In this document: in pieces, positions 4,908 to 64,000 of the stretch | Numbering within the stretch: position 1 is the stretch's first letter | Layout: every line of letters begins with the position of its first letter | Source of the DNA: Haplodiscus bocki | Taxonomy: Eukaryota | Length of the DNA: 64,000 bases | Assembly (NCBI GenBank): GCA_965655095.1 | Contig: OZ296649.1 | Location: 93,000,001-93,064,000, forward strand | Reading direction: 5' to 3' | Program-made: the position numbers and the translations under genes | Notes under the pieces: generated by a model | What the model saw: only the letters and a program-made list of their open reading frames with translations | Told to the model about the DNA's origin: nothing | Database searches by the model: none

Positions 4908-5107
4908 NNNNNNNNNNNNNNNNNNNNNNNNNNNNNNNNNNNNNNNNNNNNNNNNNNNNNNNNNNNNNNNNNNNNNNNNNNNNNNNNNNNNNNNNNNNNN
5001 NNNNNNNNNNNNNNNNNNNNNNNNNNNNNNNNNNNNNNNNNNNNNNNNNNNNNNNNNNNNNNNNNNNNNNNNNNNNNNNNNNNNNNNNNNNNNNNNNNNN
5101 NNNNNNN
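4908..5107. other. Assembly gap (200 N)
   Basis: Run of N, preceded by short AAAATACCCAAG repeats (4825-4900). Confidence 0.99.
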
Positions 5108-6977
5108 GGCAGCAATAGCAGTGATACCACCCATGGCAGCGCAAAAAACTGACGAGGAAAACCCCTAATCGCTGGTACCTTTCGCAACATCATCAATGTC
5201 AATGCCGCCGATGACAATCAGTACTGTCGACATTTGGGCGACATCTTCCGACGTGGGCATTTTCTAATCAGATCAGCCCGATGTAACTCTCTGACATCAA
5301 GCCCCTCAACCCCACCGTTCCCCAGAAAGCAGAAAAGGAATATAAGCCTAGGGTGTCCTTTCTCAAAAGAGGGGGAGTGTCGCAGCATAGCTGTGAAGCC
5401 TGCGGGCAAGTGCTACCAGAAGTAAAGATTATCCCCGGAACGTAAAGGGATTGACTGAAAATGAATGAGCACTGAACTTTATGTGTTATCTTTTAACTAA
5501 GTGTATTTATGTAACTGTTACGTGTTGTATACGTATCACTCCCGTGTACTGATCCAGCTTGAGACGGAACCGTTACGGGACAAACAGATATTCACCTATT
5601 GATAATAGTTCACATTTATCCCAAACAGTGCTATATATGCAAATAATTTATGTAGTTATTAATGTGAATCTACCTTTTCAGGAGCTATGTGCAGTACTTA
5701 AAATGAAACTGAGGCTGTCAGTAATTTTACTCAGTATGCACTTGTAATATATACAAACTGACTTCAAAAGTGAATATTTGCTCCGTCCGTGTTCCGTCAC
5801 TACCAACCTGGTGAGGTCACTCAACAATCCAATCAAATTTGCTCTGCTACTATGCTGTGTTTTAGCTAACTACGGAACAGTTCCGCGTTCAATCATTACC
5901 TTCATTTCAGCAGCACAGCTACAAGCAATGCTAAAACCGAGTACGGAACCAATCTGAAACGCACTGTTCAAGATGAGGAACCAAATAAGAGAAATGAACA
6001 ACGGACAATAAACAAGCCTATTTCAGGTCCAAATATCATCCAAATGAAGCGCAGTAAGATCACATGAACTTCTTGGGCATAACATCATGAACCCTCAAAC
6101 TAAGATTTTATCTGTTCTGATGAATTCAATTACTATTCTCCAATTATGGAAACCCTTAATCTTTTGATTTTTGTTTACATTAATATTTATTTTGCCCGCG
6201 CGGGAATAAGCAGTTTGATGTCCATTTCTGACGGATTAGGCCCGTACGTTTTTTGTCGAAAGATGAAAAGAACCCGGCCTATGAGGGAAGAAGGGGCTGG
6301 AAAAGTGTTTATTTGTCGCCAGGTTCGGCATTTTCTCTGATAGTTAATATCATTGAAATATTTCTCCTTATTTCTACCTCGAACTGGCTTGAAAACAGTT
6401 TTGTTTCCCGCCAAGGAAAAGGTAAAAACAGGGGAAACGAGAATACTTTTATTTGAAATTATTTTCTTAGTTCCGGCTATCAGTTGACGTTACAGGTTGT
6501 GACTAGTTATTTATAAAAAATCACGATTTCCTTTTTTCTTCGGAGTTGATTCAAAAATACAAAAAAATCAGTCTCCACTACTGTTGAACTTTTTTCTATT
6601 CAGAAAAATAGCTACATCGAGAAACAAGGGAAAGTTGGCAGCCGTTTCCAGAGAAACACATGAGGAACACGTCCGTTTCCAGAATCAGCGATAAGTATAT
6701 CACACAAGTTTCTGAAGAAATCGAAGGCAGAGTCACAAAGAAAATGTCCCAGGAATTCAGCAGGACAGAGTCCCGCATTTTGGATGCTCTGTTGAAATTA
6801 GACGATGTTTTCTTGAATCCACAGATACGGACACTCACTGGAACATCCCGGAACAATGAGGTAGACAACCAGTAACAAACTGGGGATCGCTCCCAGAATG
6901 ACCCCCTTCCGAAGTGGAGTTCTCTGCATGTCGGTCCGGCATTTCAATTGAACAAGACCCGGAACAGACTTACCACA
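5108..6977 (+). mobile_element. Decayed 3' end of a related LTR retrotransposon: accessory-ORF remnant, PPT (5365-5377) and LTR (5378-6977); 5' side lost in the assembly gap
   Basis: Colinear homology to 58330-56247 (inverted). Starts TGTCGC after the PPT and ends TACCACA. Contains a Gag-like remnant YITQVSEEIEGRVTKKMSQEFSRTESRILDAL with stops/frameshifts nearby. Confidence 0.85.
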
Positions 6978-7520: not shown

Positions 7521-8315
7521 TGTACCAGGTCAGCGTGTAAATTCACGGACTGAGGGGCCGTGTTGGTCGAAGTACCCACATCAGAACGGAGATCATTTTG
7601 GGAATGATCTTCATTATACTCCTGGTTTTCCTTCTCATAATTCCCAGAAGTTATCCGTAAGATTCATGATTGCAACCGAACTTGCGAGTTCACAAGAAAC
7701 ACTTTTAGTTCTGACAGTGAGCCTATAATTTGACTCTCAGTTCTGCTAACCCCTGAGACAATTTTCTAGTCATTCTGTTTTCTATTGTTCCCGAAACTTG
7801 TTTAGTGTTGTCCTCAATCACTCTGGGGACAATTGTGCCCATCAAAAGTTTTCCTTAGGTTGCTCCTACTGTCTAACTTTATTGACTGCTACTATTTTCC
7901 TCTTTTTTCTCAACGTTGCCATTTTTGAAGGAAAAAATTGAATAGCTGTCAAAATTGAATTGACGTTTTACTCTAAATTTCAACTTTGGAGTATTAAAGC
8001 ACTCGATAAATATCGTCAATATAAGAAATTTAAGGTAGTCAATAGCATCAGTACACCTATTATTTTCATTTGTTCTTCCATTTCTCCTAATTTTACTTTT
8101 TTGCCGGGAAACATAGTTGTTCACACGCCAAGTTAGCGTACAAATTAGGGAAAAGTACTTTCAATATGCTGTTTTAAAGCAAAAATGGTCATCTCACATT
8201 TTCATCCATTTCTTTCTTCATACACCGTGTTCCTTCCATATTTCGGTAGCAAACGGACAGACCTACTCAGTCGGAAACGGACATCAAAGTGCTTATTCCC
8301 GCGCGTCCTTTGATT
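7521..8315 (-). mobile_element. Third, more decayed LTR fragment of the same family (U5/gag-start portion)
   Basis: 8100-8170 matches 56840-56910 and 8200-8304 matches 56955-57060. Minus-strand ATG at 7922 gives MATLRKKRKIVAVNK.., then frameshifted ..ENRMTRKLSQG..SRTESQIIGSL. Right boundary is uncertain. Confidence 0.75.
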
Positions 8316-11300
8316 AGTCCATTTTGAGTTGTTCAGTTTTGTATGATTTATAGCACGGCAACGTCCCCAATGTTCAATAGTTTTTCCAAGTAATCAAAGT
8401 TCCTTGTTCCGCTGAAACACCAGAGGAATAGGTCCTTCAATATTCGCTGCGCCGCAATTCCAATGCTGCTCCCGACAAAGGTCGAGGTTGGGAGAAGTTG
8501 GTTCAAACCTTGAAGCATTGAGTTTTGCTGGTTGTTGAATCTGCGAAACGCACACTTGCAACAAGTTCATTCAATTATCGTGTACTGTCATTGCATGTTG
8601 AAACACCGATGAAGGATGCATGTGGGCAAGGACATCAAAGATGCCACCCCAGAAATCCCCAATCATTTCGCATTCGGTCATGCAATTTCAAATGTCTCAT
8701 CTGTAGTGTTTGAGGATCATCGCATTCCTAAATGAATAGCTCTTTTTGACCCAACACCTCCAATAATTTTCCTTCAGCTTGAAGTCTGGACGTAATGGGG
8801 GATACGATGACGAACCATTGAAGAATTGACATCCGGTGGACCTAATGGAGAAAAACACAACTGAAAAAGTCTGGCCACATAGAACAATGGAGGCGGCTCC
8901 CATTGCACCTGACGTTATCACTATGTTGTGTGGTATTGAAGAAACGTCGTGCAGTCTAACGACGCCCGTTGACAGATTAGCCTACGTTTCCCGTAAGTCT
9001 AATCTTAACTCCGCGAGGGAGTGTGTTCCTTATCATTGACCCAAACTGTGAAAGATCATACACTTTGACTACTGAGTTCTTCTACCTTCTTAACACTTTG
9101 GTGCCGAAAGGAATTGGAACAATTGGGAAATTAGAGATGGAGGGTAAACATGATCAACAAATGTTTCAAATCGAGGATGCAAAATTATTTTTTTAATGAA
9201 CCCATTGCATATCAATAAATAATTTGATAATCAAAAAATCGGATTTTTCCAGAACTTGAGAACGATTTTTAGTTTTCAATGAGCAAATCATATCTTCACG
9301 CATCAATCAGTCAAAGGTTGTAATTGGAGACTTCCAAAAGCAATTTTGTTCGATAGTTTTGAAAAACCAATTTCTTCTCTGCGTGTAAAAATTGTTAAAA
9401 GACTTTCTACAGGTATCACTATAGTAAAGCAGCTGGCGAGGTTTCTATTTCAAGTTATATAGATTGCAGAATTTTTTCTAGAAAACAAAAGACACAACTA
9501 AAAAAACTGATTGGTAAAAAGAAAGAACTGTGACAATTTTTGGGCTGCAATATTATTTCTGTATTTATTTCCGTTTTTTTTGTTCATTTTCAAAATTTTC
9601 TGAAGTTGCTCAATTTCTGAAGCTACTGGCTTAAATTCATCCAACACGGTCTCAATCGACAATTTTGTATTTTTCAAAATTATGTGAATTTTTCCAATAC
9701 TTCAGAAATCTTTTGTACGTTCGATCAATCAATTTTGTGCCACTTTGGTGAAAAATAATGCTTTGCGACCGCGCCTCTTGTTGATAATCATATTTAGTTG
9801 GAGTACTGCAATGAACCCATTGTCAAAAAAATCCGACCTGTGAAAACGACCGAAGACGACAGTAGGCTGTTTTATTGGAGTGCATCAACTAAGCAATTGC
9901 TTGACATTCATAGTTTTTCGTAAGGGATTGTATCTGGATTTCATACTACTCTTTCAGGAACAAAATCTCTGTCTTTAGAACAGATTGTCAAATTTTATCA
10001 CAAACTTCCGGAAGTGACATGACATTCAATTGATGGATACATATCCTTTATCTGTTTTTGTTTATCGGTTGTTTATTTCGGTTAATTGGACCGAATAAAG
10101 GTCACGATGCAGACAGATCTGGCCAATTTCGTTTGACTCGGTTCATTTTGTTCATGCGTATCTCTATAGATGCAACAACAAACTACAAAGACAATCAAAT
10201 CGTTAAACTGTCGAAATTCATAACCAGAGGCATTAGACGTGAAATGGATGCAATAATTTAGTTGTTTCTCAAATGCAAGCCATGACATGATCTGCTACTG
10301 AAGTGTGCAATGTAAATTTTCTGTCTTCAACAGCCCGTACCATACCAAACCGCATCCTGCTCTTGAATTTTCTAATTTTTCCATAAACAGTCAATGGAGC
10401 ATGGCGACTTTGTCCAATCAGAAATCACCAATTCAAGGCTGGTGGCATTTTTTTTACCTGTATAAGATGCATTTTCAGAGACCAAGCAAGACTCAATACA
10501 AAAAGCAGTAGTGTCTGCTAAAAATCCAGACCAGACAAGCAGAATTCAGCTTACAAGGTTACCAAAGGAAATGAAAGCTGTTCCAGATCCTGACAAATGC
10601 AGTTTGTTAGCTTTTCACTTTTATTAAAAAGGAAAAAACTGCGTTTCTATTTTCGTGCGGATATTAAGGGGTTTTTCTGCCGTCCTCCCTTCATTGCATG
10701 ATAAAATTGTCCAATAATGAATCTTCTCTTCTGAAAAACTTGGACTCTAACAGAGTTTTTTACGTTATTTCGTACCGCAAGCCCCAAAAGGTAAGTGCAG
10801 TTATTTATCAAAACTATTAATTATAATACGTGTCTTTAGAATGCATCAAAATGCCTTTGTCATTATGGCATCAACTTCTAAAGAAAGAAAATTCAGTCTG
10901 CATTGTTATATATATAAAAAAACTTAATTACCAAAAAACAAGTTCAAACGTATGGAAAATCTCTTTTGGCCCTGAAACCCTTGAAGTCTTTTGACCTCGT
11001 TCAAAGAAAATTACAACTCAATCTATGTAGAAATCAGAAGAACAAACAGGAATTGCTGGATGAACAAAAATTCAATGATCGCAACTTTTATGTCAAGAAA
11101 TATTAAAAACAACGCCGTACTACTTTATTAGCCCCACTGGTGTCCATGGAAAGAACTAGGAAGTCAGCAATGGCATAGAATGCTCATTTTTCCACTGTAC
11201 AAGATTATTGAAGCCTGAAAATGAAATTGTTAACGTAGGTATTCTTTTCAAGCGGTGCGTTTGGCATTATTACTTGATGCAAAGCGGTTACAGGCTCATT

Positions 11301-15500: not shown

Positions 15501-18500
15501 TACTTTAGTTTTCAAAAGTAAAACAATTTGACTTTCAATAATTAAAGTCAAAACTTCCAATATTTTTTTGATGTACTACTCTAATACACATTCCTTTACC
15601 ATTGATTCATTCATGTCATTTTGTTTTGTACCTTAGGATACAACTTTTCTCTTTACCCTACATTAAAATACTTTAGTACTGATCAGATGTACTTCACCGC
15701 AAATGTACCTTACAAAAAAATGTAAAACAATACCTTGTATTAGTTTCTCTCAGGTCTTATTTTACCAATTACTATAGTGTTTTATCCTTTTGAGCTTTGT
15801 GTTATAACACTTTGTAGTACTTTCTCTCAACACTGATTCGATAAAAATCTTTTTGTATTGCAACCTACAACAATTAGTGTTACAATAATGCATAAAACAT
15901 TCGCTTGTTCTTGATTTGACTGAACCCTTTAAAATTGTGTTTTGAAATCGTTTGTGAAATTTACAACGTAAAAAAATCTTTCAGTTTTGAATTGATCGAT
16001 CTTATGGTTTTGTACCGTTTTCTACTTCGTCTTATTTTACCCCATAGTGTAAACTTTTGGTGTTCAGTAGAACAAAAAACTCAGTACTGTAACGCAAAAA
16101 AACTAGAAAACTTTGTGTTACGAGATTCACTTTTAAGTTCAACTCACACCGTATTGATCAATTCTACTACTCTTAAGCCTAAACTAGAATTCTATTACCT
16201 TAATTTATTTTATTTTTCTTTGATTACGAGTGAATCGATTTCTTTCTTGTTGAACCCTTTAACACTTTCAAAAACTATATCCTAGAGTAAACTCCTTTAA
16301 TTTTAATTCGATCAAATCTTTCATTTTTGTAACCTGAAAAATTTGATTTACATTACCCTGAAACAAAATCTTTTACTATTGATTAGTTCAAACCCATCAC
16401 TTTTGTAAACGGAGTTTTTTAAAAAAATTGACCTGAAAGCTTTTCCCATGACTTTGACCTGATCACCTACTATGCTGTTTCTTTACGTAACATTGTGTTA
16501 CATTACCCTCCAGTTATTTAGTCTAGTAATGTTTCAATAAAACACTTTGGTAATGCACCAAAAGCTTTCGATAATTTTACTGTAGAGTAAAATCCTCCGA
16601 GATTGATTAGAAGAAAGTCATCGTGATTGTACCCGAAACTACTTTGGAATAAGTTAAATGATGAAATATTCGTTTAGTTTTGGCATGATCAAAAACATTG
16701 ATGTTTCGCGCATAAAACGGAGAGTAACTTTACCAAGTAGGAGTTTCCTTTAGCAATGGTTTGATCAAACTACTTTGGTATTGTACGCTAAAATACTTTG
16801 TTCTACATTATTGTTATTCGAATTCAAATATTTCTGTTTCAACAGATATCCTCAGTTTCCTGTCGTAAAAATTTTTTGTGTTACAATCAAAAAAAATATT
16901 TGACTTTTAGTGCTCAATATGATCAGATCTTTCACTTTTGTACCCTAAAATTTTTAGTGTTGGGTTGACCTAAAATAACTCTTTTTACTATTGATTCGAT
17001 CAAATCCTTTAGTGATATACCCTAAGAAAGCTTGAATCACTTTATCTTAAAGTAAACTTCTTCTTGTTTGATAAGCTGAGAGCCATCGTGATTGTACCTT
17101 AAAATGCTTTGCAATAAATTATTTCCAACATATTCTTTCAGTTTGGACATGATCAAAATTTTTAGTTTTTTGTCTTACAATATTATGAGATACCTGAACA
17201 AGTAGTAGCTTCCTTTCGCATTAGTTTTATCAAACACTTCAATATTGTATCCTAATAAAAGTGCGTTTTACAAAACCGTATGATAAAATATTTTCTTTGT
17301 GATTTGATCAAATCGCTTCTCCTTCCACCACAATGAACTTTATTTTACATTGACTAAAGTAAACACTTGTTGTATAGATTCGATCAAACCTTTTGTTGTT
17401 CAACACTGGAACAATTCCGTATAACAGTACCCTCACCCAAAAACATTGTTTGTTTTTCATCTCAGGGAAATCTTTTGTTTCTGTACGTCATAAGACTCTG
17501 TAAATTTTTCCCTGCAAAAATATGAAATTTTATTGAGTTCATGAAATCCTTCGGTAATGTACAATGAAAAATTTTGTATTAAAAAACCAACAGCGTATCC
17601 CTTCACTAAAACGTTGATCAAATCAAAAAAACATTGAAATACATTCCCACATTGATTTTTGTCAGAATTGATTGGATCAATTACTTTAGCGTTTTGACCT
17701 AAAACACTTTGTGAATCAAAAAACGATAGCTAAAACTTTTATTATTGATTTGATGCCTTTTTTTGGTTTTTCTGACTGAAAATTTGTAAGACGTCACCGT
17801 ACAGTTGATTCCGTTCTTTATTATTTGAGCGACACCTTTGCGAAAGTACCATTAAAGTTTTTGTTTAACATACCCTCCAGCATTTTCTTATCATTATGAT
17901 TCGACTGAATAATTTGGTGTTGCACCTGAAAACGGTCCTTGTTACCCTAAATGTTGGTAGATTTTTGAGTTTTCATTCTATAATTTTTCTGCTATTTCAA
18001 CTGAAACCTTTGGTGTTACCTTACCGTACAGGCATATCCGTCAGTATTGGTTGGATGATACCCTTAACTAATTTAACCTACAACATTTTGTAGTACAGTA
18101 CCATATAGTTGTTTCCTCACTACAAGTTTTATCAACTTTTCCGGTTTTTGACCTTGAAATACATCAAAAAGAAACATCGTGTACTATATTTTTTGGTATG
18201 GACTCGCTCGAATAATTTTGTCTTGCACCCTAAAAAATACAATTCGTTAACTGATAGTAAGTACATTCCTTGGGTAATCATCAAAAATTTCAGTTAGGTA
18301 CCCTAAAAAGCATCGTTTTACCTTCTCTACGAAGTTTTTCAAATGTTTTGATCTAATCTTTCAGTTTTCCGCCTTAAGATACATTCGAAACCATTTCTTG
18401 ATGTAAATTGCTTTCAAATTTGAGTTGATAAAGCCATTTACTTTTGTGTTCTATGAAATTGACTTTTGCCTAACCCTATGGTAAACGCCATGTGTTTTTT

Positions 18501-21500
18501 TGTGAAAAGCTTTGAACACTGTACGCAAAACACTTTATAATACAATACCTTATGTCAAATGGTTTTATTATTGACTTCGTCACAAACTTCTGTATTGTGT
18601 ATTGTTTTCTAGAACACTTTCTAATAAATTGGCTCATGGTAAAGGAAGTGTAACTTTGAACTGAGAACATGCCCTTCTATTGTTCCCCAGTAATCTTTGT
18701 TGTAGACTAACCATTGAATAACGCTTCTGTGAACATCCGCTCAAATCTTTTTGTTCTATACCCCAAAATGCTTTTACTATAATACCCTAAAATAGGTTCA
18801 TTTCTGATGGATTCATCAAATCATTCGGGTATGTTCCTTTAGCTAAATGGTTTTACAGTACCTTATAGCAAAGTCCTTAGGCATTGATTTGATCATAGTT
18901 TTAGTTCTGCAACTTCAATATCTCCTAATTGCAAAAACTTGAAACAAAACCAAGTAGGATTGATTCAATCCAATGCTTTCACATTTTACCCAACAAACTT
19001 TGTATTAGTGTGCCCTGTAGAAAGAGTTCATCAAACTCTTTAGTGTTTTCAACTTTAACAAAATGTATTAAAGTGCCGGCTTTCAATTCCGTTTTTTCGA
19101 CTTGACCGGCGTTTTAGTATTTTTTACTTGAAAAAAATCTTGCCATTTTACCCTGAAATGAACTCCGCCATTACTGACTTCATCGAACCCTTTACTCTTG
19201 TGGCCCAGAACACTTTGTATGACTTAGCTCCATTTTATATGTCCTCTTCTACACATGAAAACTACTAGACTTGTACTTTAAAATACCATGAACTACCCTA
19301 CACTTTTGAACGCTCTTTTAGTAGTCAAGCGATTGAATCCATAAATTTTGTCCTGTTAGAAAAATCTACATTAAAGTTTTAAAGTTTTTGAAACTTTTAT
19401 TGATCAAATAATTATGTTTTCTATTCTGGCTGATTGTTCATTACAGTACAGTATAGAGAAAACAATTTTTTCTAATTTGGTTATAAGCTCTAGTTGTGTA
19501 CCCTAAAGAAGTGCGTATGTCAATACTGTTTGCAAATTCTTTTATTAGTGACTTGATCAAAACCTCTTGTACTGGAAAATAAAGCACTACGTATCACAAA
19601 AATCGTCAGTAAGATCCCTTAAGAAATTATTCGATCAAATCACTTATTTCTGTCCACTAGAACACTTTGAAATACATTAGCCATTGGTTTTTTCTTCAAT
19701 ATTGATTCGGTCATTTCTTCAAAAATGTACTTTTAAACACTTTCCGTTAAAATACCGCATAGTAAGAACCGTACTGATTCGATAAAAAAAGTTCTATATT
19801 GTGCCCTAAAAAACATTGTAATACAGAATCATAGATTAGGTTACCTTAGTTTTGTTTTGAGCAACATCTCCAGTATTATACCTCAAGAAACGAAGTATCG
19901 TAGTAAACACTAGTTGATTTTTTTTCATCTTTCATCTAAAAATTCATCTAAAAGATACTTCTGTCTTTCAGTATTGATTTGATCAAATCCTTTGGTATTG
20001 TACCTAAATGTACAGCGTATTACATTACCCGATAATAATTTGGTTTTCTACTATTTTATCGAATACCTTTACTGTAAAAAACTTTTTCTTACATTCCCCA
20101 ATAAAAGGACTCTTGAGGTTTGATGGGATCAAAACATCAGTTAGTTGGAACCTAAAAAACAAATTATCGCAGTACCCTCAAATACTTTTTTTCGAGATGG
20201 TTTGATCAAAAATTTTAGTATAATATCTTCAAATACTTTGCTTTACAATACTTCTTTCCCACAAATTTTTCTACTCATTCGACGAAATATTTTGTAACGA
20301 ACAGTACAAGATTTTTGTTTGTATTACCTCATCGTAGAACATTGTAGTGCAGATTTGAATGATACCATGGGTGTTTTACATTGAAAGGGTAACACTAAAA
20401 ACCTACAGTAGTTTGTTTTAATTTCGCTCGGTTATTTCTCCGCTTACAAAACTCTCTAGTAGAATACAACAGTGTTGCTTAGCTCATAGCATCTATTGTT
20501 GTAGCCTGAACAGTCACGTCGCACAAAACATTTCTTAAAATAAAAAACCTTGGAAGTCATATGATGAAACTTTCAGCTACCGTACCCTGAAACACTTTGA
20601 AAAACGAAACATTATAGTAAAGTCCTTCAGTATTGAGTTAATACAATCCGTTGGTCTTGTACACTAGAATGCTTAGAACACAAAAGCCAACAGTAGTTTG
20701 TTTTTGTACTGACTTGGTCACTTTTTCAAGTATCGTATTTCTAAATTTATCAATATAAAGTATCGGTTACACACTTTCCCCAGTTTTACAATGATCAAAT
20801 CATTTGGTATTGTGCTCTAAAACACATTGTTTTCTATCATTCTTTTTTATATTCTGCCTTGTCTTCTTCAGAATTCTCAGTATTGGATCCAGAAGAATCT
20901 TGAAATATTGTACGTTATAGTGAAGACATTCCTTATTGATTTTGCCAAATCCTTTGTTCTGTGACCTAAAACTTTCTGTACTACAAACAATTAGTAAACT
21001 CCCTTAGTGCTGATTTGATCAAATATTTTAATACTGTAAAATGAAACGTTTTGATATATATCACACTTCAGTAAACTCCTTTAGTACTGATTCGATCAAA
21101 TACTCAGGTTTCGTACCTTTTAAAAACTTGTTTTAGATTACCGATTGGAAAAATTCCATTGAAATCCTTTGATCAAACATTTTGGAATTGTGCTCTGAGA
21201 AACATTTTTGTAAGACGCTTTCGAGAAAACTTTTTTGTTTCCCTCAAATCCTTAACTAGTATTCCAACCCGAAGATCGTTGGAATACCAGACAAAATGGT
21301 AATGTCCTTCAGTTTTGATTTGATCGCATTCTTTTCTTCTGCAACCCAAGCCTAACTGAAGGACACTACAGTACATAAACTTTTATCAGTCCTCATTGGT
21401 TTGTAACTTCTCATATTGTCTACCCTAAAAGAACTACTATCACGACAACCTTTTTTTCTTTTAGTATTGACTTGATCAATTTGTTTATTTCATTACCAAA

Positions 21501-52740: not shown

Positions 52741-52940
52741 NNNNNNNNNNNNNNNNNNNNNNNNNNNNNNNNNNNNNNNNNNNNNNNNNNNNNNNNNNNN
52801 NNNNNNNNNNNNNNNNNNNNNNNNNNNNNNNNNNNNNNNNNNNNNNNNNNNNNNNNNNNNNNNNNNNNNNNNNNNNNNNNNNNNNNNNNNNNNNNNNNNN
52901 NNNNNNNNNNNNNNNNNNNNNNNNNNNNNNNNNNNNNNNN
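52741..52940. other. Assembly gap (200 N)
   Basis: Run of N, preceded by an (AT)n microsatellite at ~52697-52715. Confidence 0.99.
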
Positions 52941-56220: not shown

Positions 56221-56646
56221 TCAACATCTGCAGATACCTTCACTGATGTCGCGATCTTCTTCTGGGCCAGCGTTTCGAGTTGATTGGCCGTGGAAGAGAC
56301 CCGCTTCAGGATGAGGATCATTCTGGGAGTCGTCCTCATTCGTTCCCTGGTTATTTCTTAAAGCGCTCCGGGCGGGCTCTGGAGTGGCTCCGGAGTACCC
56401 CGGTAGCAATGGGTTCATCAGAAAGTCATCAAGTCGCGCCAGCGCGCCTAGAATGCGATTTTCCGTTCTACTAAACTCTTTTGACAGTCTTTTTGTAACC
56501 CTTCCCTCAATTTCCTCAGAAACTTGAGTTATGTAATCTTCTTGCGATCTAGGAGCGCTTAAGTTTTGTGCCAAGTTGCTCCTAGGGTGTTCTTCACAAT
56601 TTTCTTTGTTCAACGCTGCTAACTTCCTCTTATTCCGAGTTGTCAT
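56221..56646 (-). CDS. Probable Gag N-terminus encoded inside the LTR, truncated at the LTR end (last ~8 codons are flanking DNA)
   Basis: ORF MTTRNKRKLAA...YITQVSEEIEGRVTKRLSKEFSRTENRILGAL is open for 400 nt up to the LTR end at 56247. Homologous peptides at 6660-6875 (+) and ~7680-7922 (-). Gag identity is inferred from position. Confidence 0.65.
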   Translation of the reverse strand: MTTRNKRKLAALNKENCEEHPRSNLAQNLSAPRSQEDYITQVSEEIEGRVTKRLSKEFSRTENRILGALARLDDFLMNPLLPGYSGATPEPARSALRNNQGTNEDDSQNDPHPEAGLFHGQSTRNAGPEEDRDISEGICRC

Positions 56647-58110
56647 TTTTGAGGGGAAAAGTATTTATCAGTCAGTAATACTTTATTATTTGAGTCAAAG
56701 AGAATGAGAAATCAACTTGCTTCTAGCAGTAACAGAGAATGTTCAGAAAGAAATTTTAAGAGTACTGGGTTAATATCATCAGTAGCATACAAATATCAAT
56801 TGTGTCTTGTATTTTCATTTCTCCTATTTATACTTTTTCCTGGCGGGAAACATAATTGTTTACCCGCCAAGTCAAAGTACAAATAGGGAAAAATACTTCT
56901 GACTACAGCACATCAAAGTTAAAAAATGCCGACTCAGGCGGGAAATAAACAACTTTTCCATCCATCTCTTTCATCATAGGACGCGCCTTTCCCGTCTTCC
57001 GACAGAAAATTGACGGTCCTAATCCGTCGGAGATGGACATCAAAGTGTTTATTCCCGCGCCGACAAGTTGTTTGTTGTATACTCCATAGATGGAAAGTTC
57101 AGAGAATTTCCTTGTTTAGGAGAGTAAAAAATAAAATTACGAAAATGAAGAAAGTAAATTAAAATACAAAATGCATGACTTCATCACATTTAATCATCAC
57201 CTTCATGTTCATATCACCATCATCTAATTAAGCTTTCAGTATTTTGGAAATGAGGAGAAACTAGTATAATTACCAATTCACTCCTCGTTCCGCCTAGTAG
57301 CTACTAGTGGTCTCCGGAGCAGCTCCGTAGCCACTAGTAGTGCAAGTTAATATTTCAGTCTGCTACTAGTGGCCTCCGGAGGCGCTCCGTAGCCACTAGT
57401 AGTACGAGTTAATATTTCAGTCTGCTACTAGTGGCCTCCGGAGGCGCTCCGTAGCCACTAGTAGTACGAGTTAATATTTCAGTCTGCTACTAGTGGCCTC
57501 CGGAGGCGCTCCGTAGCCACTAGTAGTACGACTCAATTTAGTCGGCCGTGAACGAATTAGGAGTGAATACGGAGTCACTCCGTAATCACCATAGCACTGT
57601 AGCACGGCATAGTTAAAATAATATTAATGACGTCACCAAACTAGTGACGACGGAACACGTACGGAACAAATATTCACTCCGAGAGTCAATTTGTTACGAG
57701 TAAGCCGCTTTGATACGAGCACTTCTAAAAGTCAATCACTGCATTTATTACTACTAATTACTGCAATTGTACCGAAAAGGTGGATCTATATTTTATCTAA
57801 ATAAATAGATAATTAAGTAAATTAATATAAAAATAGCACCTTTAAGGAAACAATTGCTCTGTGAATACTTATATTGCTCCGTAACGGTTCCGTCCTAGTT
57901 TGGATCAGTTGATATTTTCTGTGCATTTGTTATGGATACGTACTTCATACGTATCCGTATATATGCACATTGATTAAGGAATGGTCTAAAAATGAATAAT
58001 TATGAGTCTGATTAATATTAGAGTTTCGGGTTTTAAGTTTCTGGTTGATTGTTGGGATGTCTTTATCTATGGAAGAGGTTGTCCGCATGCCTCGCAGGTG
58101 TGCTGCGACA
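56247..58110 (-). repeat. 3' LTR, 1864 bp
   Basis: Termini TGTCGC/GCGACA. Homology to 5378-6977 starts and stops at the same boundaries; shared blocks include 57865-57907 vs 5548-5595, 57630-57690 vs 5757-5820 and 56925-57060 vs 6198-6335. Confidence 0.88.
57300..57531. repeat. 62-bp tandem hairpin array inside the LTR (~3.7 copies)
   Basis: Unit GCTACTAGTGGCCTCCGGAGGCGCTCCGTAGCCACTAGTAGTACGAGTTAATATTTCAGTCT starts at 57300 (variant), 57362, 57424 and 57486; each unit has an 11-bp stem CTACTAGTGGC/GCCACTAGTAG. Confidence 0.95.
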
Positions 58111-58744
58111 CTCCCCCCTTTTTGGGAAAAGACATTCCCATACTCAGCCTTCTCTTTCTTCGTGGAGGAGGCGGCGGTGTGGATGGAGGGCTTGGACTGG
58201 GATATACTCTTCGGGGTTCACCTGACTCAAAAGTCTCGTTAAGGGAAGCATCCCAGTATACCCGTCTTGGATCGTTATCAGACGAATGAAAGGTATTGTC
58301 ATCCGTTGTAGTGTGCGGCGTCTCCAATCCACTTTTTGTACTAATGTTCATCGGCGGAGTTGAAATTGGTGACGGATCAGACGGCTCGGGTGATTGGGGG
58401 CTGTCTTCCTGATCATGCTGTACAACGGCCATAGATGCTAGTATGTTAAAGGGATTGGCCGGCAAATTAAGATCATTTAAACTTGGCGGCACTATCGGGT
58501 ATTGGGCTCCGAAGGCATATGGGAGAGTCGGCTCATTAGAGTCAGAGTCAATGGTGACTATTTGTGGCTCCGGAGAGGCGACGGAGGAAATCGTGATCGT
58601 CTCCGGGTCTATAGCTCCCGATAGCTGCGTCGAGTTCAAGATAACCGGAGTATTGTGTCTGATGGGGCTCCTTTCTGGCGAAGATTGCTCCACATAGAAA
58701 ACATCAGAGTCTGTTGACGAATTAAGTGGAATATTCCGATACAT
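58067..58744 (-). CDS. Sense-strand Ser/Pro-rich accessory ORF (225 aa) overlapping the PPT and the first 44 bp of the 3' LTR; C-terminal basic patch and HxCxxC
   Basis: Intact ATG-to-stop ORF. A homologous decayed frame at 5109-5435 (AAIAVI..DEENP*S..SMPPMTIST..SPSTPPFPRKQKR..RGGVSQHSCEACGQVLP) shows amino-acid-level conservation. Confidence 0.7.
   Translation of the reverse strand: MYRNIPLNSSTDSDVFYVEQSSPERSPIRHNTPVILNSTQLSGAIDPETITISSVASPEPQIVTIDSDSNEPTLPYAFGAQYPIVPPSLNDLNLPANPFNILASMAVVQHDQEDSPQSPEPSDPSPISTPPMNISTKSGLETPHTTTDDNTFHSSDNDPRRVYWDASLNETFESGEPRRVYPSPSPPSTPPPPPRRKRRLSMGMSFPKKGGVSQHTCEACGQPLP
58111..58123 (-). promoter_or_regulatory. Polypurine tract (plus-strand primer)
   Basis: AAAAAGGGGGGAG abuts the LTR TG. 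The homologous AAAAGAGGGGGAG lies at 5365-5377 (+). Confidence 0.85.
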
Positions 58745-59113
58745 CGTAATAAAGTTTGAATTATTTTAGGGCTGCTGCTTATTGACAAAGTGACTTGAAA
58801 AGTGATGATATTACTGAAACGTAAGTCGGCACATGCCGTTAGGCGGGAGACGCTTTGAAGTTCCCGCGGTTTCAGTAAAAGTATTAGAGTCGCTGAATTG
58901 GCGGTGTAACTGAAGTTGATGATTGGTAAACAAAATGAAGATGAGATTTTAGGAATGAGGAAATTTTGAGTTCCACTCCTCAATGTATCCTTGAAATAAT
59001 TGCTGACGTCATTGCTGGCAGACAAATCGGTCAAATTAAATAATCATGATAATTAATGAATAAAATTATAAATCCACCGTGTAATAGTTGAAAAGTAAGC
59101 CACGCCGTTCATC
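58745..59113. promoter_or_regulatory. Candidate internal (possibly bidirectional) promoter between divergent accessory genes
   Basis: 369-bp AT-rich gap between head-to-head ATGs (58744 - and 59114 +). CRE-type palindrome TGACGTCA at 59004-59011 and TATAAAT at 59067-59073. Confidence 0.45.
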
Positions 59114-62100
59114 ATGTCTGATGAGAGACAGCAAAAGAAGAAGAAGAGTCGAGTGGTCGTGAGAGACGAAAGTTGTTGTCAGTTGGAGAGTTCCGGAGCA
59201 GCTCCGGATGTCATTGTGTCCCCTTTTGGTCAGTTCCCCCCTGATCTCCCCATTGTGCATGAGGCTGTTGTGAGTGAAGAGGCGAGGAGAAGAGTGGATG
59301 ACGAGGGCACGGAGGCTGATGATGAGTCAGAAATCATCTCTGTGGGTGGACCTCTGTCAATTGTCTGCGAGTCTGAGGGAGTCACGTTCGAGGAGGCAGT
59401 CGGGAGGGCTGGCCTCATTTCAGGAACGGACAATGCTGTTGATACTGCTGGGCTACCGATTTGTTAGTTTTCAAGCTTCTCGGAAAATCCATTAACTTTT
59501 TTTGGGATGTCACACTGGCCAGTTGTTCGATCCGTTAAGTTAGTTGTCATGCGCGCATAATCAGGAGAAGTTGACTTTACCAACGGGTTGTATTTTAGTG
59601 TATGATTCTGCTGGTGAGCCTGCCAAGCATTCCGTTCGTGGCAGTGGAGAGTGTTCTGCTTCAGGCAGCGAATTTGGAGTTGGAGGAGCAACTTCAGGAG
59701 AAGACTTTCCCCGGAGAGCTTCCCGGAGAGCTCCGTTGGCAGCTGTTGCTGAGAGTTGGTATTGCTCTCGCATAATTATCATGGTAGTGTTTCCAGGGTA
59801 TTTTCATGATTGCATTCTGTATTTCAGGCACTGAAGAAGCGATAGGTGGAGATGGAGCCGAAGAGGTGTCCACTGGCTTGGAGAGCGAGGGTGTGGTGCG
59901 CAGGAGACGGGCAGTTGTTACTAGGCAGCTAGTACCGCTCGCTGGGGGGCCCCAGCATTGTCTTCCTGTGGCCAACTCAAGCCAAGATCGGAGTCGTCAA
60001 CTGCTGGAGAAGGCGTTTGATGAGGGTATACCTTTGTTTTAAATGAGTAGCCTTCTAGTATGACTCCTCGTTGGCTCCATGTTTGTGATCCACATTTGTC
60101 TGTTTTAGATCAGTACTCTGGAGATCCTTCATCATCTGTGATTCGAGCGACAGGGCATCAGTTGGTGTCTCTCTGCCGTTCAGTAGTTGAGGAGGAGAAG
60201 AATCAGCTCCTGGGTCCATTGATGACCAGTTAGTCCTCCGGAACTGTTCCGTATGACTCCGTAATTCTGTGGTTTCATGATTTGTTTTTCGTTTGCAGAG
60301 CTTGATGAGGTGTTGGGCAAACTCGGTCAGGGGCCGTCCATACCACAGCAGCAGCAACATCGTGTGAGTGACACGACAGATACCAGTGGGGAGGACACTG
60401 ATGTGGAACAACCTCGTCGGCGGGTGCGCTCCAGACGCACCTTCAAAATGAAGAAGGGTTACGCTGTTGGGGAATTGGCTCAGTTTTTCGTCACCGGGCC
60501 CACTGATGCTGCAAATAAACTGAGCGAGTTTTACTGCAGAGTATGCAGGAAGGACGTGTCGGTTCGTACACACGGGGAGTACGAGATCATCCGGCACTTC
60601 CAAGGACACCGCCATTTTTCTCGCGATCAGCGACTTCGGCTCGAGACACCTGGTTGGCGGGTGTTGGACTTTGACGGCAACCCACTCCCTGAAGACGAGC
60701 TTGAGAGACAGCGGGAGAGAATTATGCTTGCTCCATTAGTCGTTCGGGACCGAGAATATCCTTTTCGGGAGGATTTGATTCCGGATGCCTCCGGAAGTGT
60801 GGACGCTCAGCTTCCGTTGTTGGCCAAAGTCTCTTGCCTGATTGATAATCTGCAGTTGGGTGGGAGCTACGAGCTGGTGGAAAAGCTGTGGGAGCGCTTT
60901 GTGTTGACGGCCAGTCAAATCAATGTGACCGTTGCTTGGTCCCGCGATGAGGTTTTGGTTAGTTCCGTAGTACCTCCGGATCCATATGGACTAATTGGTT
61001 TCAATTCGAGTAACATTTTTGTTTCTGTTTTAGTCCATTTTGCTGAACGGAATGCTGCCGAGGATCTTGACACGTGTTGTTGAGTGGGTGAGGGCACATC
61101 GGCAGTTCGGTGTGGAGTTTGTAACTCACGGCTCTGCAACTTGGGTGTTCGTGAGGACGTGGAAGGCTGGGGAGTTTGTTCGGGTAGCGGTAGCCATCAT
61201 TGACCGCTATTATGGCGATGCAAGCAGTGAGCTGGCGATTCTGGGAAAGATCCTGAGCGCGGTGGGCAGCGGGGCATCACTGGTTTCTCTCTCTGGCGGC
61301 TCCCACACATTAGTAGAGTGCTACAAGGAGTACCTCGGCAGTGGGTACACGAAGACCTTTGTAGATTACCCGGTTTTCGATGCAAGGTTGCTGAAGCGAT
61401 GCCTGCAAAAGACTGCATCACTTGTGTTCGGGACATTGGACCCCTTTTCAATGACAGAGTTAATTGTGGTGAGGCTGAAGGGGGCGGAGCATCGAGACTG
61501 GATGCAGTCAAGGCAGTCTCTTCGTCGGGCCATTGAGACGGGCGATCTTTCTCTTCCCGGTCTTCTTGATGTTGTGAGCAACATCATTGGTGTGTGGCCG
61601 CTGATCGTCTCGTATCTCAAAGAGACTGGAAAGAAAGACAGCGGAGATAGCCTTGTGGTATGGTTCTTCCTTTTGCGCTTCTTTGCCATCTAGCGCCCAT
61701 AGTCATCTCTGTTTTCTTGTTTAGAAAAAAGGGGTAGATGGATACTTTTATGTCGACCAACTGGGCAGAATGAGGTTCCGTCTGTTCCATCTTATCCTCG
61801 AAATGTGTTAGTATTTCCACCAACATGTCACCATGGTGTAGTAGCTGCCATTCTCTTGCGATTTTGGGCTATGGGAATTCTAGGAGTCAACTTGGAGTGC
61901 TCCTAGTGGCCTCCTCATTTTCACATTTTCGGGATTTCTAGGAGTCAACTTGGAGTGCTCCTAGTGGCCTCCTCATTTCAGGCTGGTGAGAGAATTCTAG
62001 GAGCCAACTTGGAGTGCTCCTAGTGGCCTCCTCATTTCAGGCTGGTACTCAGTGGCATTCTTCTGTTTCAGACAACAACAACTTCAGCGCAGAACAGACT

Positions 62101-63489
62101 CCTGGCAGTGGGTACGGGTATCGGGCGTATGGCGAGCTGTCCCACTTTGTGTATTGCATCCTGCAAAAGATCAAGAAGAGTGAGTCGCTTCCCTTGGTGG
62201 AGAAATGGGAAGATTACATGCTGCCGAACCACTCTTCATTCGCTGCCATTGCTGATGAGCATTTTCTCGTGGGGACCCGCATCCATGCAGCTTTAGAGAA
62301 GATGTCGAGCCCGTACTTGCGGAAAGAGTTCCGGACTGGTGCCCGTCATTTCCTTGACGAATTTTGCAGCACCATTTTGTCAACCGTGGCTGCCAGATCA
62401 AAACTGGGACAGGGAGTCAGCTGTTTCTGCCCTGAAATCATTCTCGGAGGCGATGACTATTCCGCCTTTTTCTTGTTTGGACAGCTTCTGGATGGACTTG
62501 TGGAGTGTGGTTGGGAGAAGGGATCCCACATTGAGGCTTGCAAAGCCGAATTTCAATCGTTTGTCCGGGAGCAGCGCCAGTTGGAACGTCATTCCACGAG
62601 GAAGCGTCCTGATGTAGGGAACATCCTGGCCTACTTCGCTCATCAATCCGGATTTCAGAGTCGCAAGCACCTGTTCCGCGTAAGTAGTCGCACCAGTTCC
62701 ACGGTAGCCTTCATTGTAAGCACTAATTGTAAGTCTTTGTTGCAGGTGTACCAATTGACGACCTTGTTTCTTCGGGAATCTGTTGAGGACTTGCCCGCAT
62801 TCACTGTCAAGTTGACTGGAATTGCTTTGAGTCGCCGGCTTGTGGAGAAGTCAATTGCGTGCATTCAGGATTTTGTGCGGTCGCCTCGGTTTACCCAGCG
62901 CGATTTCTTTAGCGACAATGGGGTGAACTTGCTCGTTTCTGCCGTGAATGCTGCTGGTTCGATGCGCGACCAATCCACTTGCGAGCCTTGGGCGAATGTT
63001 CTTCCTGATGGTTATGAGGCTACTTTTGCTGATCTCAGGAAGGCGTATGATGTTGTGGTGGTTAGGCGGAAGGAGGCACGCGATACATCAGAGAGATGGT
63101 TCGGGGTGCGCAGTGTCGAGTCCTCTGAAGTTGGGGAGTCATCTGGTCGGGCTGGAGTGAGAATCTCCAATGTTGTTGAAGTTGGACAGGTCGAATACTT
63201 GTCTGGGTCGGTACCTGCTCGGGATCAGCCTTGCAGCAGCACTACAGTGTCTCCTCGAAGCCCTGGGAAAGGAAAGCGAAAGAGAAGCGTGACACCTACT
63301 CCTGCTGTTGGACCCAAACGACTGTTTGAGTTTAATGACGAGTCGATTGTTCTGCCACAGGGGAGGGGGGTATATTTCGAAGATCCAAATTTTGAATGCG
63401 CGTTGAGGAGTCAAGAAAAAACTGCTGCATCTCGCCGGAGTGGTCGCAGTCGCCGTGCTGCACCAGTCTTCCAGTCTAGTCCCCGATAA
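59114..63489 (+). CDS. Antisense 9-exon accessory gene inside the retrotransposon; 1179-aa protein with BED-like C2H2 zinc finger and hAT-transposase-like body
   Basis: Exons: 59114-59462, 59599-59754, 59828-60025, 60109-60228, 60299-60957, 61034-61657, 61725-61806, 62072-62679, 62746-63489. Total 3540 nt = 1180 codons with no internal stop. All 8 introns are GT-AG with pyrimidine-rich acceptors (66-265 bp) and matching phases (1,1,1,1,0,0,1,0). The model joins the listed ORFs at 59114, 59544, 59806, 60277, 61040 and 62014. Zinc-finger motif FYCRVCRKDVSVRTHGEYEIIRHFQGHRH; basic NLS-like patches KKKKSR and KGKRKR. Confidence 0.85.
61875..62046. repeat. ~58-59-bp tandem repeat (3 copies) in intron 7 of the antisense gene
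   Basis: TTCTAGGAG(T/C)CAACTTGGAGTGCTCCTAGTGGCCTCCTCATTT occurs in units starting at ~61875, ~61933 and ~61992. Confidence 0.93.
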
Positions 63490-63840
63490 CTTAACATATC
63501 ATTTGCATTTTAAATTATATTTAGTATTTAGAGTATGTAGTTAACTGTCTATAGCCCGCTGTCACTTTACAGAGTTGAGTAGTAGTTGAGTATGTCGCCA
63601 GGGTGTATCCTCAAAATGTTAGGAGTAGCTTGTATGTACTCCGTATTGTGTCCGTCGCCATTATTTTTGGGAAATTTCAGGAGATTTGCGGGATGTCTCC
63701 GGAGGCACTCCGGAGACATACTGATTCTGAGTTCTGTCGGGGAACGTGTATGGGCTCCGGATGCGCTCCGTATCACATTCCCAAAATCCACATTTGGTAT
63801 CCGTAGTTGTTCCGGATACATGCCAAGGCAGACTAACGAT

Positions 63841-63999
63841 TTAATATCTGTAATCGTCATTGCAATTTGGCCTTGGATTGTGGCGTAGGTTATATTTTGA
63901 GCTGCGGGGGTTGGTGGGCGTAGGGTCAATTCGCTCTACGCTGTTGTCCGCATCAAGCTGCATGTAGTGATCCGTATCGGCTCCGTCGTCTATTTCATC
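63841..63999 (-). CDS. Probable C-terminal tail of Pol/integrase (partial, open at window edge)
   Basis: Frame DEIDDGADTDHYMQLDADNSVERIDPTPTNPRSSKYNLRHNPRPNCNDDYRY* is open from the edge, on the same strand as the LTR/PPT. The basic 'YNLR' tail resembles gypsy-type integrase C-termini. Only 52 aa are visible. Confidence 0.55.
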   Translation of the reverse strand, partial: DEIDDGADTDHYMQLDADNSVERIDPTPTNPRSSKYNLRHNPRPNCNDDYRY

Positions 64000-64000
64000 T

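Follow-up and report, generated by a model that had tools for sequence, protein, structure and literature searches.

A Ty3/gypsy-type LTR retrotransposon with an antisense, intron-bearing gene

We analysed a 64,000-nucleotide window of Haplodiscus bocki contig OZ296649.1 (assembly GCA_965655095.1, positions 93,000,001 to 93,064,000), the last part of which contains the 3' half of an LTR retrotransposon on the minus strand and a long gene on the plus strand. The only ORFs above 143 aa in the whole 64 kb lie in this region. An Rfam search of the whole window gave no hit. The features identified are as follows.

56242-56246 (no strand): flank next to the outer LTR end (ACTGA), the candidate 5-bp target-site duplication (TSD)
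56247-58110 (minus): 3' LTR of 1,864 bp with TG..CA ends
56221-56646 (minus): ORF that starts inside the LTR about 400 nt before its end (141 aa here); in the 5' LTR of relatives it reads on over the PBS towards gag
57300-57531 (no strand): 62-bp tandem repeat (3.7 copies) of palindromic units inside the LTR
58111-58123 (minus): polypurine tract, AAAAAGGGGGGAG on the minus strand
58067-58744 (minus): sense-strand ORF3 (225 aa, Ser/Pro-rich), running over the polypurine tract into the LTR
58745-59113 (plus): promoter-like spacer between the divergent ORF3 and the antisense gene, with the CRE palindrome TGACGTCA at 59004-59011 and TATAAA at 59067-59072
59114-63489 (plus): antisense gene, stop-free in the window copy, with predicted exons 59114-59462, 59599-59754, 59828-60025, 60109-60228, 60299-60957, 61034-61657, 62041-62679 and 62746-63489 (1,162 aa)
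60299-60957 (plus): exon 5, with a basic cluster, an FVTG motif and an invariant CxxC-x16-H-x5-H zinc finger
61034-61657 (plus): exon 6, with a predicted RNase H-like core (three strands, helix, strand, helix) followed by helices and no conserved catalytic Asp
61873-62046 (no strand): 58/59-bp tandem repeat (about 2.9 copies) inside intron 6; the copy number differs between element copies
63490-63840 (no strand): spacer between the convergent stops of the antisense gene and pol, with CTCCGGAG-type palindromes
63841-64000 (minus): last 52 codons and the stop of pol (integrase C-terminus), cut by the window edge

We first confirmed the retrotransposon features. The LTR starts with TGTCGC and ends with GCGACA on the plus strand and aligns end to end, at 92-94% identity, with both LTRs of full-length relatives, including those at 4218-5965 and 17991-19736 of L002, one of ten related loci (designated with L numbers) found in public assemblies. 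The polypurine tract lies directly upstream of the LTR and is identical in L001 and L002. The minus-strand frame is open from the window edge to a stop at 63841-63843 and matches the last residues of the 1,047-aa RT-RNaseH-integrase ORF of L002 and of the L003 integrase ORF. The ORF inside the LTR is 58% identical to the L003 5'-LTR ORF that abuts a DUF1759 gag ORF, and its dN/dS is 0.26 against L002. ORF3 is 61% identical to its L003 counterpart, with a dN/dS of 0.18 against L002, and has no Pfam match.

The plus-strand gene can be spliced into a stop-free ORF from the ATG at 59114 to the stop at 63489. The best-supported model contains seven introns (59463-59598, 59755-59827, 60026-60108, 60229-60298, 60958-61033, 61658-62040 and 62680-62745), all GT..AG and with phases 1,1,1,1,0,0,0, and gives a protein of 1,162 aa. 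Simple splice-path searches either over-split the gene into 16 introns or used weak sites, and only the model supported by relatives was retained. The 9 exons and 1,179 aa proposed in the first-pass annotation were not reproduced exactly. Several other stop-free paths exist in the 5' third of the gene, where the model is ambiguous, and inside intron 6, where the 58-bp tandem repeat has acceptor-like ends; the number of introns is seven, perhaps eight. The 3' two-thirds of the model is robust.

The window stops inside pol and lacks RT, gag, the PBS and the 5' LTR, and the architecture of the complete element is inferred from relatives that extend past this edge. These come from metagenome-type assemblies of unidentified eukaryotes and not demonstrably from the genome of the window. 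L002, which is 92-94% identical to the window and collinear with it from 56247 to 64000, has LTRs that are 99.5% identical, the TSD GACGT and the PBS TGGTGACAGGAGT, and carries CCHC gag, protease (gag-asp_proteas), RVT_1, RT_RNaseH, Integrase_H2C2 and rve on the minus strand. Four more full-length elements in two diverged lineages (L003, L005, L007 and L008) have 5-bp TSDs and the same PBS. The five full-length elements are about 15.5-16.7 kb long, with LTRs 98.6-99.9% identical and gag-PR-RT-RNaseH-INT on the strand opposite the gene. The pol, gag, PBS, matching 5' LTR and TSDs anticipated by the first-pass annotation, which had read the region as an LTR retrotransposon carrying an antisense gene between pol and the 3' LTR, were borne out in these relatives.

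The gene is not single-copy; exon 6 alone has more than 1,000 clusters at 90% identity. It lies between pol and the 3' LTR, on the opposite strand, in 10 of 10 loci with enough flank, which come from two samples, and gene fragments occur in a third sample. The gene co-diverges with pol: where pol is 75% and 64% identical, the gene is about 60% and 25-35% identical, respectively.

The introns are supported by comparison alone, without transcript data, and splicing, the start site and the polyadenylation site are accordingly inferred. Exons 4-8 align end to end in L003 and L004, while the gaps between them keep GT..AG but change in length and sequence. Introns 3-7 sit at the same codon positions in a subfamily whose pol is 75% identical. 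Introns 5 and 6 are also kept in a lineage with 64% pol identity, in which intron 7 is precisely absent. Between copies that are 92-94% identical, nearly all indels lie in introns or non-coding DNA. The gene also appears to be under purifying selection, with a dN/dS of 0.10 over 887 codons against L002 and 0.09 against L001; a pol baseline between L001 and L002 was uninformative because the two are nearly identical (dS 0.016). L001 and L002 each carry one single-base indel in the gene although the LTRs of L002 are 99.5% identical, so an intact gene in cis is not needed for every insertion. One CRE lies upstream of the gene in the six loci examined (the window, L001, L002, L003, L005 and L008), and a TATA-like box is present in the window family. 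The suggestion of the first-pass annotation that this is a host-style gene with its own promoter is therefore partly supported.

The predicted protein matches no Pfam family. Pfam searches of every exon and ORF of the window and of 94 family members gave nothing above noise, and PDB sequence and profile searches gave only ZMAT2 at an E-value of 0.01, which is not significant but in which the zinc ligands are aligned. The four ligands (C79, C82, H99 and H105) are invariant. In an AlphaFold model, residues 240-330 of the sequence P0423 have pLDDT of 63-77 and an RNase H-like order of strands and helices, although both structure models obtained have low overall confidence, with mean pLDDT of 50.7 and 42.0. 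The top Foldseek hits in PDB are Hermes, Mos1, HIV integrase, MMLV RNase H, an Argonaute and UvrC, which are all RNase H-like folds, but all E-values are above 0.001. A Foldseek search of the C-terminal model against PDB gave nothing (E above 1), and a search of the exon 5-6 model against a viral library gave nothing significant. No invariant Asp sits at the ends of strands 1 and 4 in the family alignment. The possibility that the gene is an inverted duplicate of the element's own integrase was rejected at profile level, as hhalign against the integrase alignment gave a probability of 0.25%.

Taken together, we consider it likely that 56247-64000 is the 3' half of a Ty3/gypsy-type (Metaviridae-like) LTR retrotransposon in which the plus-strand gene is a fixed, selected component of the element lineage; the architecture, the integral status of the gene and the reality of the introns are each highly likely. 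The gene appears to be transcribed from its own internal promoter-like region. The genomic RNA of the element is the complement of this gene, so the introns would read CT..AC on that RNA, escape recognition by the spliceosome and be copied into every new insertion. This shielding of the introns by antisense orientation, which the first-pass annotation had proposed, is an inference from established knowledge that the data fit but do not test directly. The product of about 1,160 aa has an acidic, poorly conserved N-terminal third, basic NLS-like clusters, one invariant CCHH zinc finger of matrin/U1-like or BED-like spacing, a predicted degenerate RNase H-like core without DDE residues, and a long helical region. 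Our tentative guess is that it is a nuclear, nucleic-acid-binding accessory factor acting in trans for the element, in transcription control, RNA handling, silencing evasion or targeting, and it may derive from a transposase-like protein captured in antisense orientation.

Other explanations were considered. That the gene is an independent DNA transposon, for example hAT-like, nested by chance in this copy is very unlikely. The weak fold matches to Hermes and the order of zinc finger and RNase H-like core recall hAT transposases, and could still describe the ancient origin of the gene, but its position and orientation are constant in 10 of 10 loci, including lineages with only 27-60% protein identity, no inverted repeat brackets 58745-63840, no Asp is conserved at the expected catalytic positions, no hAT Pfam domain was found, and the gene co-diverges with pol. 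An assembly chimera, or a host gene next to a solo LTR, is least likely of all: the window does end before the rest of the element and contains two N gaps elsewhere (4908-5107 and 52741-52940), yet independent long contigs from other assemblies show the same order inside LTR pairs with TSDs.

It is also unlikely that the gene is a passenger, a cellular gene transduced once and carried along without use to the element. LTR retrotransposons are known to capture ORFs downstream of pol (PMC6431247), and the single-base indels in L001 and L002 would be compatible with this view. However, dN/dS is about 0.10 between element copies, the gene is retained through pol divergence down to 64% identity and in young insertions of three lineages, the upstream CRE is conserved, and captured passengers are treated as present in one or a few copies in a review of plant elements (PMC7264820). 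Antisense transcripts with regulatory roles are discussed for several retroelements (PMC7264820), and the convergent layout with pol would produce complementary RNAs, but a role as RNA alone, with the long ORF incidental, is very unlikely given the strong excess of synonymous over non-synonymous change, the invariant zinc ligands, the avoidance of exons by indels and the stop-free exon cores in diverged young copies.

A more speculative and rather doubtful reading is that an old and widespread lineage of Ty3/gypsy elements in AT-rich (probably invertebrate) genomes has kept this intron-bearing antisense gene as a third obligatory gene, encoding a catalytically dead, transposase-like zinc-finger protein that could, for example, handle the double-stranded RNA created by the convergent layout, blunt host silencing or steer integration. 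Introns would then be inherited through an RNA intermediate and even gained or lost along the way, as with intron 7.

Retroelements are expected to shed introns because they copy through spliced RNA. Here a gene with seven or eight inferred introns is kept across element lineages whose pol proteins have diverged to 64% identity and in copies young enough to have 99.5-99.9% identical LTRs, which indicates that a retroelement can carry an intron-rich gene through many rounds of copying via RNA. Such genes would be annotated as host genes or as scattered short ORFs, as happened in the public collections, and gene counts and transposon libraries for these genomes may therefore be wrong. No description of an intron-rich antisense gene in an LTR retrotransposon was found in the literature searched.

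The closest known cases are the antisense ORFs of plant Ty3/gypsy elements (maize Grande gene23, rice RIRE2, Silene Retand and PvRetro13), which also lie between pol and the 3' LTR on the strand opposite gag-pol and are present in most copies of the family; that of Grande has its own promoter and a nuclear product, tandem repeats occur in the same region, and the function is unknown (PMC7264820, PMC11963269). The plant ORFs are described as continuous and neither review mentions introns, in agreement with the remark of the first-pass annotation that known antisense ORFs are typically short and intron-poor. Retand ORFs carry the Transposase_28 domain (PF04195), which was not found here; the present gene is much longer, has 7-8 introns and resides in an AT-rich, non-plant-looking eukaryote in an element whose gag has DUF1759. 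Antisense accessory genes in LTR retrotransposons are thus probably not only a plant phenomenon.

Additional genes downstream of pol, some expressed from internal promoters, occur in other retroelements such as bdelloid Vesta/Juno (ORF3) and Oikopleura Tor (env), and retroelements that keep introns, such as Penelope-like elements, are known (PMC5408684, PMC4402516, PMC6431247); in the passages and abstracts searched, those ORFs are described in the sense orientation and without multi-intron structure. Hermes-type hAT transposases share the succession of an N-terminal CCHH finger, an RNase H-like core and a long helical region, but the Hermes hits have E-values of only 0.007-0.08 and TM-scores of about 0.15, and neither a DDE triad, the hAT dimerisation domain (PF05699), the BED finger (PF02892; no such Pfam hits even at E up to 5-10) nor TIRs were found. 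The antisense genes of deltaretroviruses (HBZ type; the topic is mentioned in PMC7264820) are likewise protein-coding, expressed separately from the genomic RNA and, in the spliced form, apparently contain one intron; they encode short bZIP proteins transcribed from the 3' LTR, whereas here the promoter-like region is internal, the protein is unrelated and there are 7-8 introns. The same logic seems to underlie engineered retrotransposition indicator cassettes, in which an intron placed antisense to the element's RNA is not removed from that RNA and so is kept or scored after reverse transcription. Those are artificial single-intron reporters, to which the gene described here offers a natural, conserved, multi-intron counterpart.

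The window is AT-rich (31-38% G+C) except for its last 6-8 kb, which reach 47-50%. Every ORF longer than 143 aa lies in 56.2-64 kb, and the rest of the window (1-56000) gave no Rfam hit and, for the ten ORFs tried, no Pfam hit; two 200-nt N runs (4908-5107 and 52741-52940) are also found there. Diverged relatives of the LTR, 70-77% identical, are present at 5353-6850 and 8070-8304 and are remnants of a related element family; the first is inverted relative to 56380-58135 and lies next to the N run 4908-5107. The main features of the last 8 kb are as follows.

56247-58110, minus strand, LTR, beginning TGTCGC and ending GCGACA when read on the plus strand and followed at once by CTCCCCCCTTTTT, which on the minus strand is a polypurine tract (PPT) abutting the start of the LTR
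56221-56646, minus strand, conserved ORF that starts inside the LTR about 400 nt before its end
57300-57531, tandem array of 62-bp palindromic units inside the LTR (3.7 copies)
58067-58744, minus strand, sense-strand ORF3 (225 aa, Ser/Pro-rich, C-terminal CxxC), divergent from the antisense gene and running over the PPT into the LTR
59004-59011, palindrome TGACGTCA (CRE/ATF-type)
59114-63489, plus strand, antisense gene under the model supported by relatives
61873-62046, tandem array of 58-bp units inside intron 6 (2.9 copies)
63841-63843, minus strand, stop of a frame that is open for 52 codons at the window edge

Between the LTR and the 52-codon frame, the plus strand holds a chain of long open segments in changing frames. 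A path search that rewards splice sites over-split the gene, whereas searches that minimise introns found several stop-free paths, which differ only in the first third and inside intron 6. The model that relatives support runs from ATG 59114 to stop 63489 and gives a predicted protein of 1,162 aa with seven introns.

59463-59598, intron 1, donor GTTAGT, acceptor TTTTAG, phase 1
59755-59827, intron 2, donor GTTGGT, acceptor TTTCAG, phase 1
60026-60108, intron 3, donor GTATAC, acceptor TTTTAG, phase 1
60229-60298, intron 4, donor GTTAGT, acceptor TTGCAG, phase 1
60958-61033, intron 5, donor GTTAGT, acceptor TTTTAG, phase 0
61658-62040, intron 6, donor GTATGG, acceptor TTTCAG, phase 0
62680-62745, intron 7, donor GTAAGT, acceptor TTGCAG, phase 0

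The first-pass annotation had described 9 exons and 1,179 aa, probably by placing a small extra exon in intron 6, where the 58-bp repeat units resemble the units of the LTR array and end in acceptor-like TTTCAG. This detail could not be reproduced, but the observation of an antisense, intron-bearing gene between pol and the 3' LTR stands as a whole. The copy number of the arrays differs between element copies (124-nt and 64-nt indels).

We next examined relatives that reach beyond the window edge. The last ORF (61990-63486) has more than 150 relatives among called proteins of public assemblies, all of which are unnamed fragments called exon by exon. An exhaustive HMMER search found 888 representative clusters, 550 of them at E <= 1e-10, and exon 6 alone has 1,047 clusters at 90% identity. 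Looking up the encoding contigs gave eleven loci, of which L001-L004, L009 and L010 come from sample ERZ26859043, L005-L008 from sample ERZ25074608, and L011, a short contig, from a third sample, ERZ1742291. In all ten loci with enough flank, the gene is followed on the opposite strand by ORFs with rve, Integrase_H2C2, RT_RNaseH, RVT_1 and aspartic-protease domains; in the better-preserved loci, a gag ORF (DUF1759, or Retrotrans_gag with a CCHC knuckle) comes after those.

The locus L002 is 92-94% identical to the window over 56247-64000 and is a complete element of 15.5 kb. Its LTRs, 4218-5965 and 17991-19736, are 99.5% identical, and it has TG..CA ends, the 5-bp duplication GACGT on both sides, the PBS TGGTGACAGGAGT next to the 5' LTR, and the same PPT as the window. 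L003, L005, L007 and L008, representing two more diverged lineages, are also complete, with LTRs 98.6-99.9% identical, 5-bp duplications and the same PBS. The C-terminus of the L002 and L003 pol ORFs matches the window's 52-codon minus-strand frame. The window therefore holds the 3' half of such an element, cut inside pol. The ORF at 56221-56646 (-) has counterparts at L003 18104-18496 (-) and L002 17866-18390 (-). In the 5' LTR it reads across the PBS and, in L003, abuts the DUF1759 gag ORF with a 4-nt overlap; it is 58% identical between subfamilies with a dN/dS of 0.26, so part of the leader or gag region seems to be LTR-encoded. ORF3 is 61% identical in L003 and has a dN/dS of 0.18 against L002; no clear counterpart was detected in the distant L005 lineage, and there is no Pfam hit.

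The copies vary in their state of preservation. In the window copy, the antisense gene has no break under the model, and pol is cut only by the window edge. L001 and L002 each have one single-base indel in the antisense gene; the pol of L001 is split into two ORFs and its gag region into several. L004 has at least one frameshift in the gene and a split pol, and L009 and L010 are heavily decayed.

In the absence of RNA data, the case for the introns rests on comparison. Window exons 4-8, taken one at a time, align end to end with L003 and L004 (54-63% identity for exons 4-7 and about 40% for exon 8), while the gaps between them keep GT and AG but differ in length and sequence. Frame-preserving GT..AG introns with good consensus exist at the same codon positions in L003, L007 and L008, and the exon cores there have no stops. 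In the most distant lineage (pol 64% identical, gene 25-35%), introns 5 and 6 are kept, but intron 7 is absent to the codon, the two exons being fused exactly at the junction (L005, L007 and L008, about 10618-10625); this is an intron gain or loss within a gene carried by a retroelement. Between the window and L001 or L002, indels are common in the LTR, spacers and introns but almost absent from exons. In one L003-type copy, intron 5 happens to be stop-free and in frame, so that the gene caller produced a 440-aa read-through protein (P0423), showing what the unspliced reading looks like.

Over exons 5-8, dN/dS is 0.10 against L002 (887 codons, dS 0.21) and 0.09 against L001, indicating purifying selection. 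Pol is 75% identical between the window family and L003 and 64% identical between the window family and L005, and the antisense protein is about 60% and 25-35% identical over the same pairs; the gene therefore evolves faster than pol but in step with it. Together with the fixed position, the lack of flanking inverted repeats and the youth of several insertions, this rules out a nested independent transposon, a chance neighbour or an assembly artefact, and also argues against a useless passenger. ORFs with DDE_1 and hAT dimerisation domains lie just outside the 3' LTR of the element in L005 (644-3816, minus strand), but they belong to unrelated DNA-transposon remains in the flank and not to the element.

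The 370-bp spacer between the gene and the divergent ORF3 contains the palindrome TGACGTCA at 59004, and also TATAAA at 59067, 47 nt before the ATG. Exactly one such palindrome lies upstream of the gene in the window, L001, L002, L003, L005 and L008. As a sequence observation only, this fits an internal promoter, and the spacer may be a bidirectional one. A second motif, CTCCGKA, often within CTCCGGAG palindromes, occurs 32 times in the element (56388-63772) against about 1.5 expected, and only twice in the other 56 kb. It lies in the LTR repeats, introns 4 and 5, exons and the gene-pol spacer, and is equally enriched in L002 (51 against 2.2 expected) but not in L003 (3); it may be a family-specific binding site.

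No exon and none of 94 relatives matches a Pfam family. Alignment of exon 5 across lineages shows an invariant FVTG motif and invariant C, C, H and H residues in the spacing CxxC-x16-H-x5-H, preceded by a basic cluster. A profile of this exon hits only ZMAT2, a matrin/U1-type finger, at E 0.01 with the four ligands aligned; the spacing would also suit a BED finger. Structural analyses were performed on single exons and natural read-through ORFs. The AlphaFold model of the exon 5-6 read-through protein has low overall confidence (mean pLDDT 42), but residues 240-330 reach 63-77 and form helix, three strands, helix, strand, helix, the order of an RNase H-like core. Foldseek against PDB ranks Hermes hAT transposase chains first (E 0.007-0.08), followed by Mos1, HIV integrase, MMLV RNase H, an Argonaute and UvrC, all of which are RNase H-like folds. 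None reaches E 0.001 and TM-scores are about 0.15, so this is a lead and not a result. No Asp is conserved where the catalytic residues would sit. The C-terminal half is predicted to be helical, with pLDDT 65-85 over the exon 7 part; the rest is undefined, and there is no fold match. A profile comparison with the element's own integrase is negative. We therefore describe the product as an orphan, probably nuclear, zinc-finger protein with a predicted degenerate RNase H-like core, possibly transposase-derived. What the protein does is speculative; an accessory nucleic-acid-binding factor used by the element is our best guess and not a finding.

From established knowledge, we infer that the genomic RNA is transcribed from the 5' LTR on the minus strand; on that RNA the introns are reverse complements, so they are not spliced out and are copied faithfully by reverse transcription. 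The gene's own mRNA would be made from integrated DNA on the other strand and spliced normally.

We found no description of a long, multi-intron antisense gene conserved in an LTR retrotransposon lineage, although the literature surveyed was incomplete and did not extend to transposon databases. Antisense ORFs between pol and the 3' LTR are themselves established in the plant Ty3/gypsy families Grande, RIRE2, Retand and PvRetro13. Their function is unknown, those of Retand carry a Transposase_28 domain, and introns are not mentioned in two reviews (PMC7264820, PMC11963269). The element described here differs in the length and multi-intron structure of its antisense gene. Captured sense ORFs and internal promoters are known in animal elements (PMC5408684, PMC4402516, PMC6431247).
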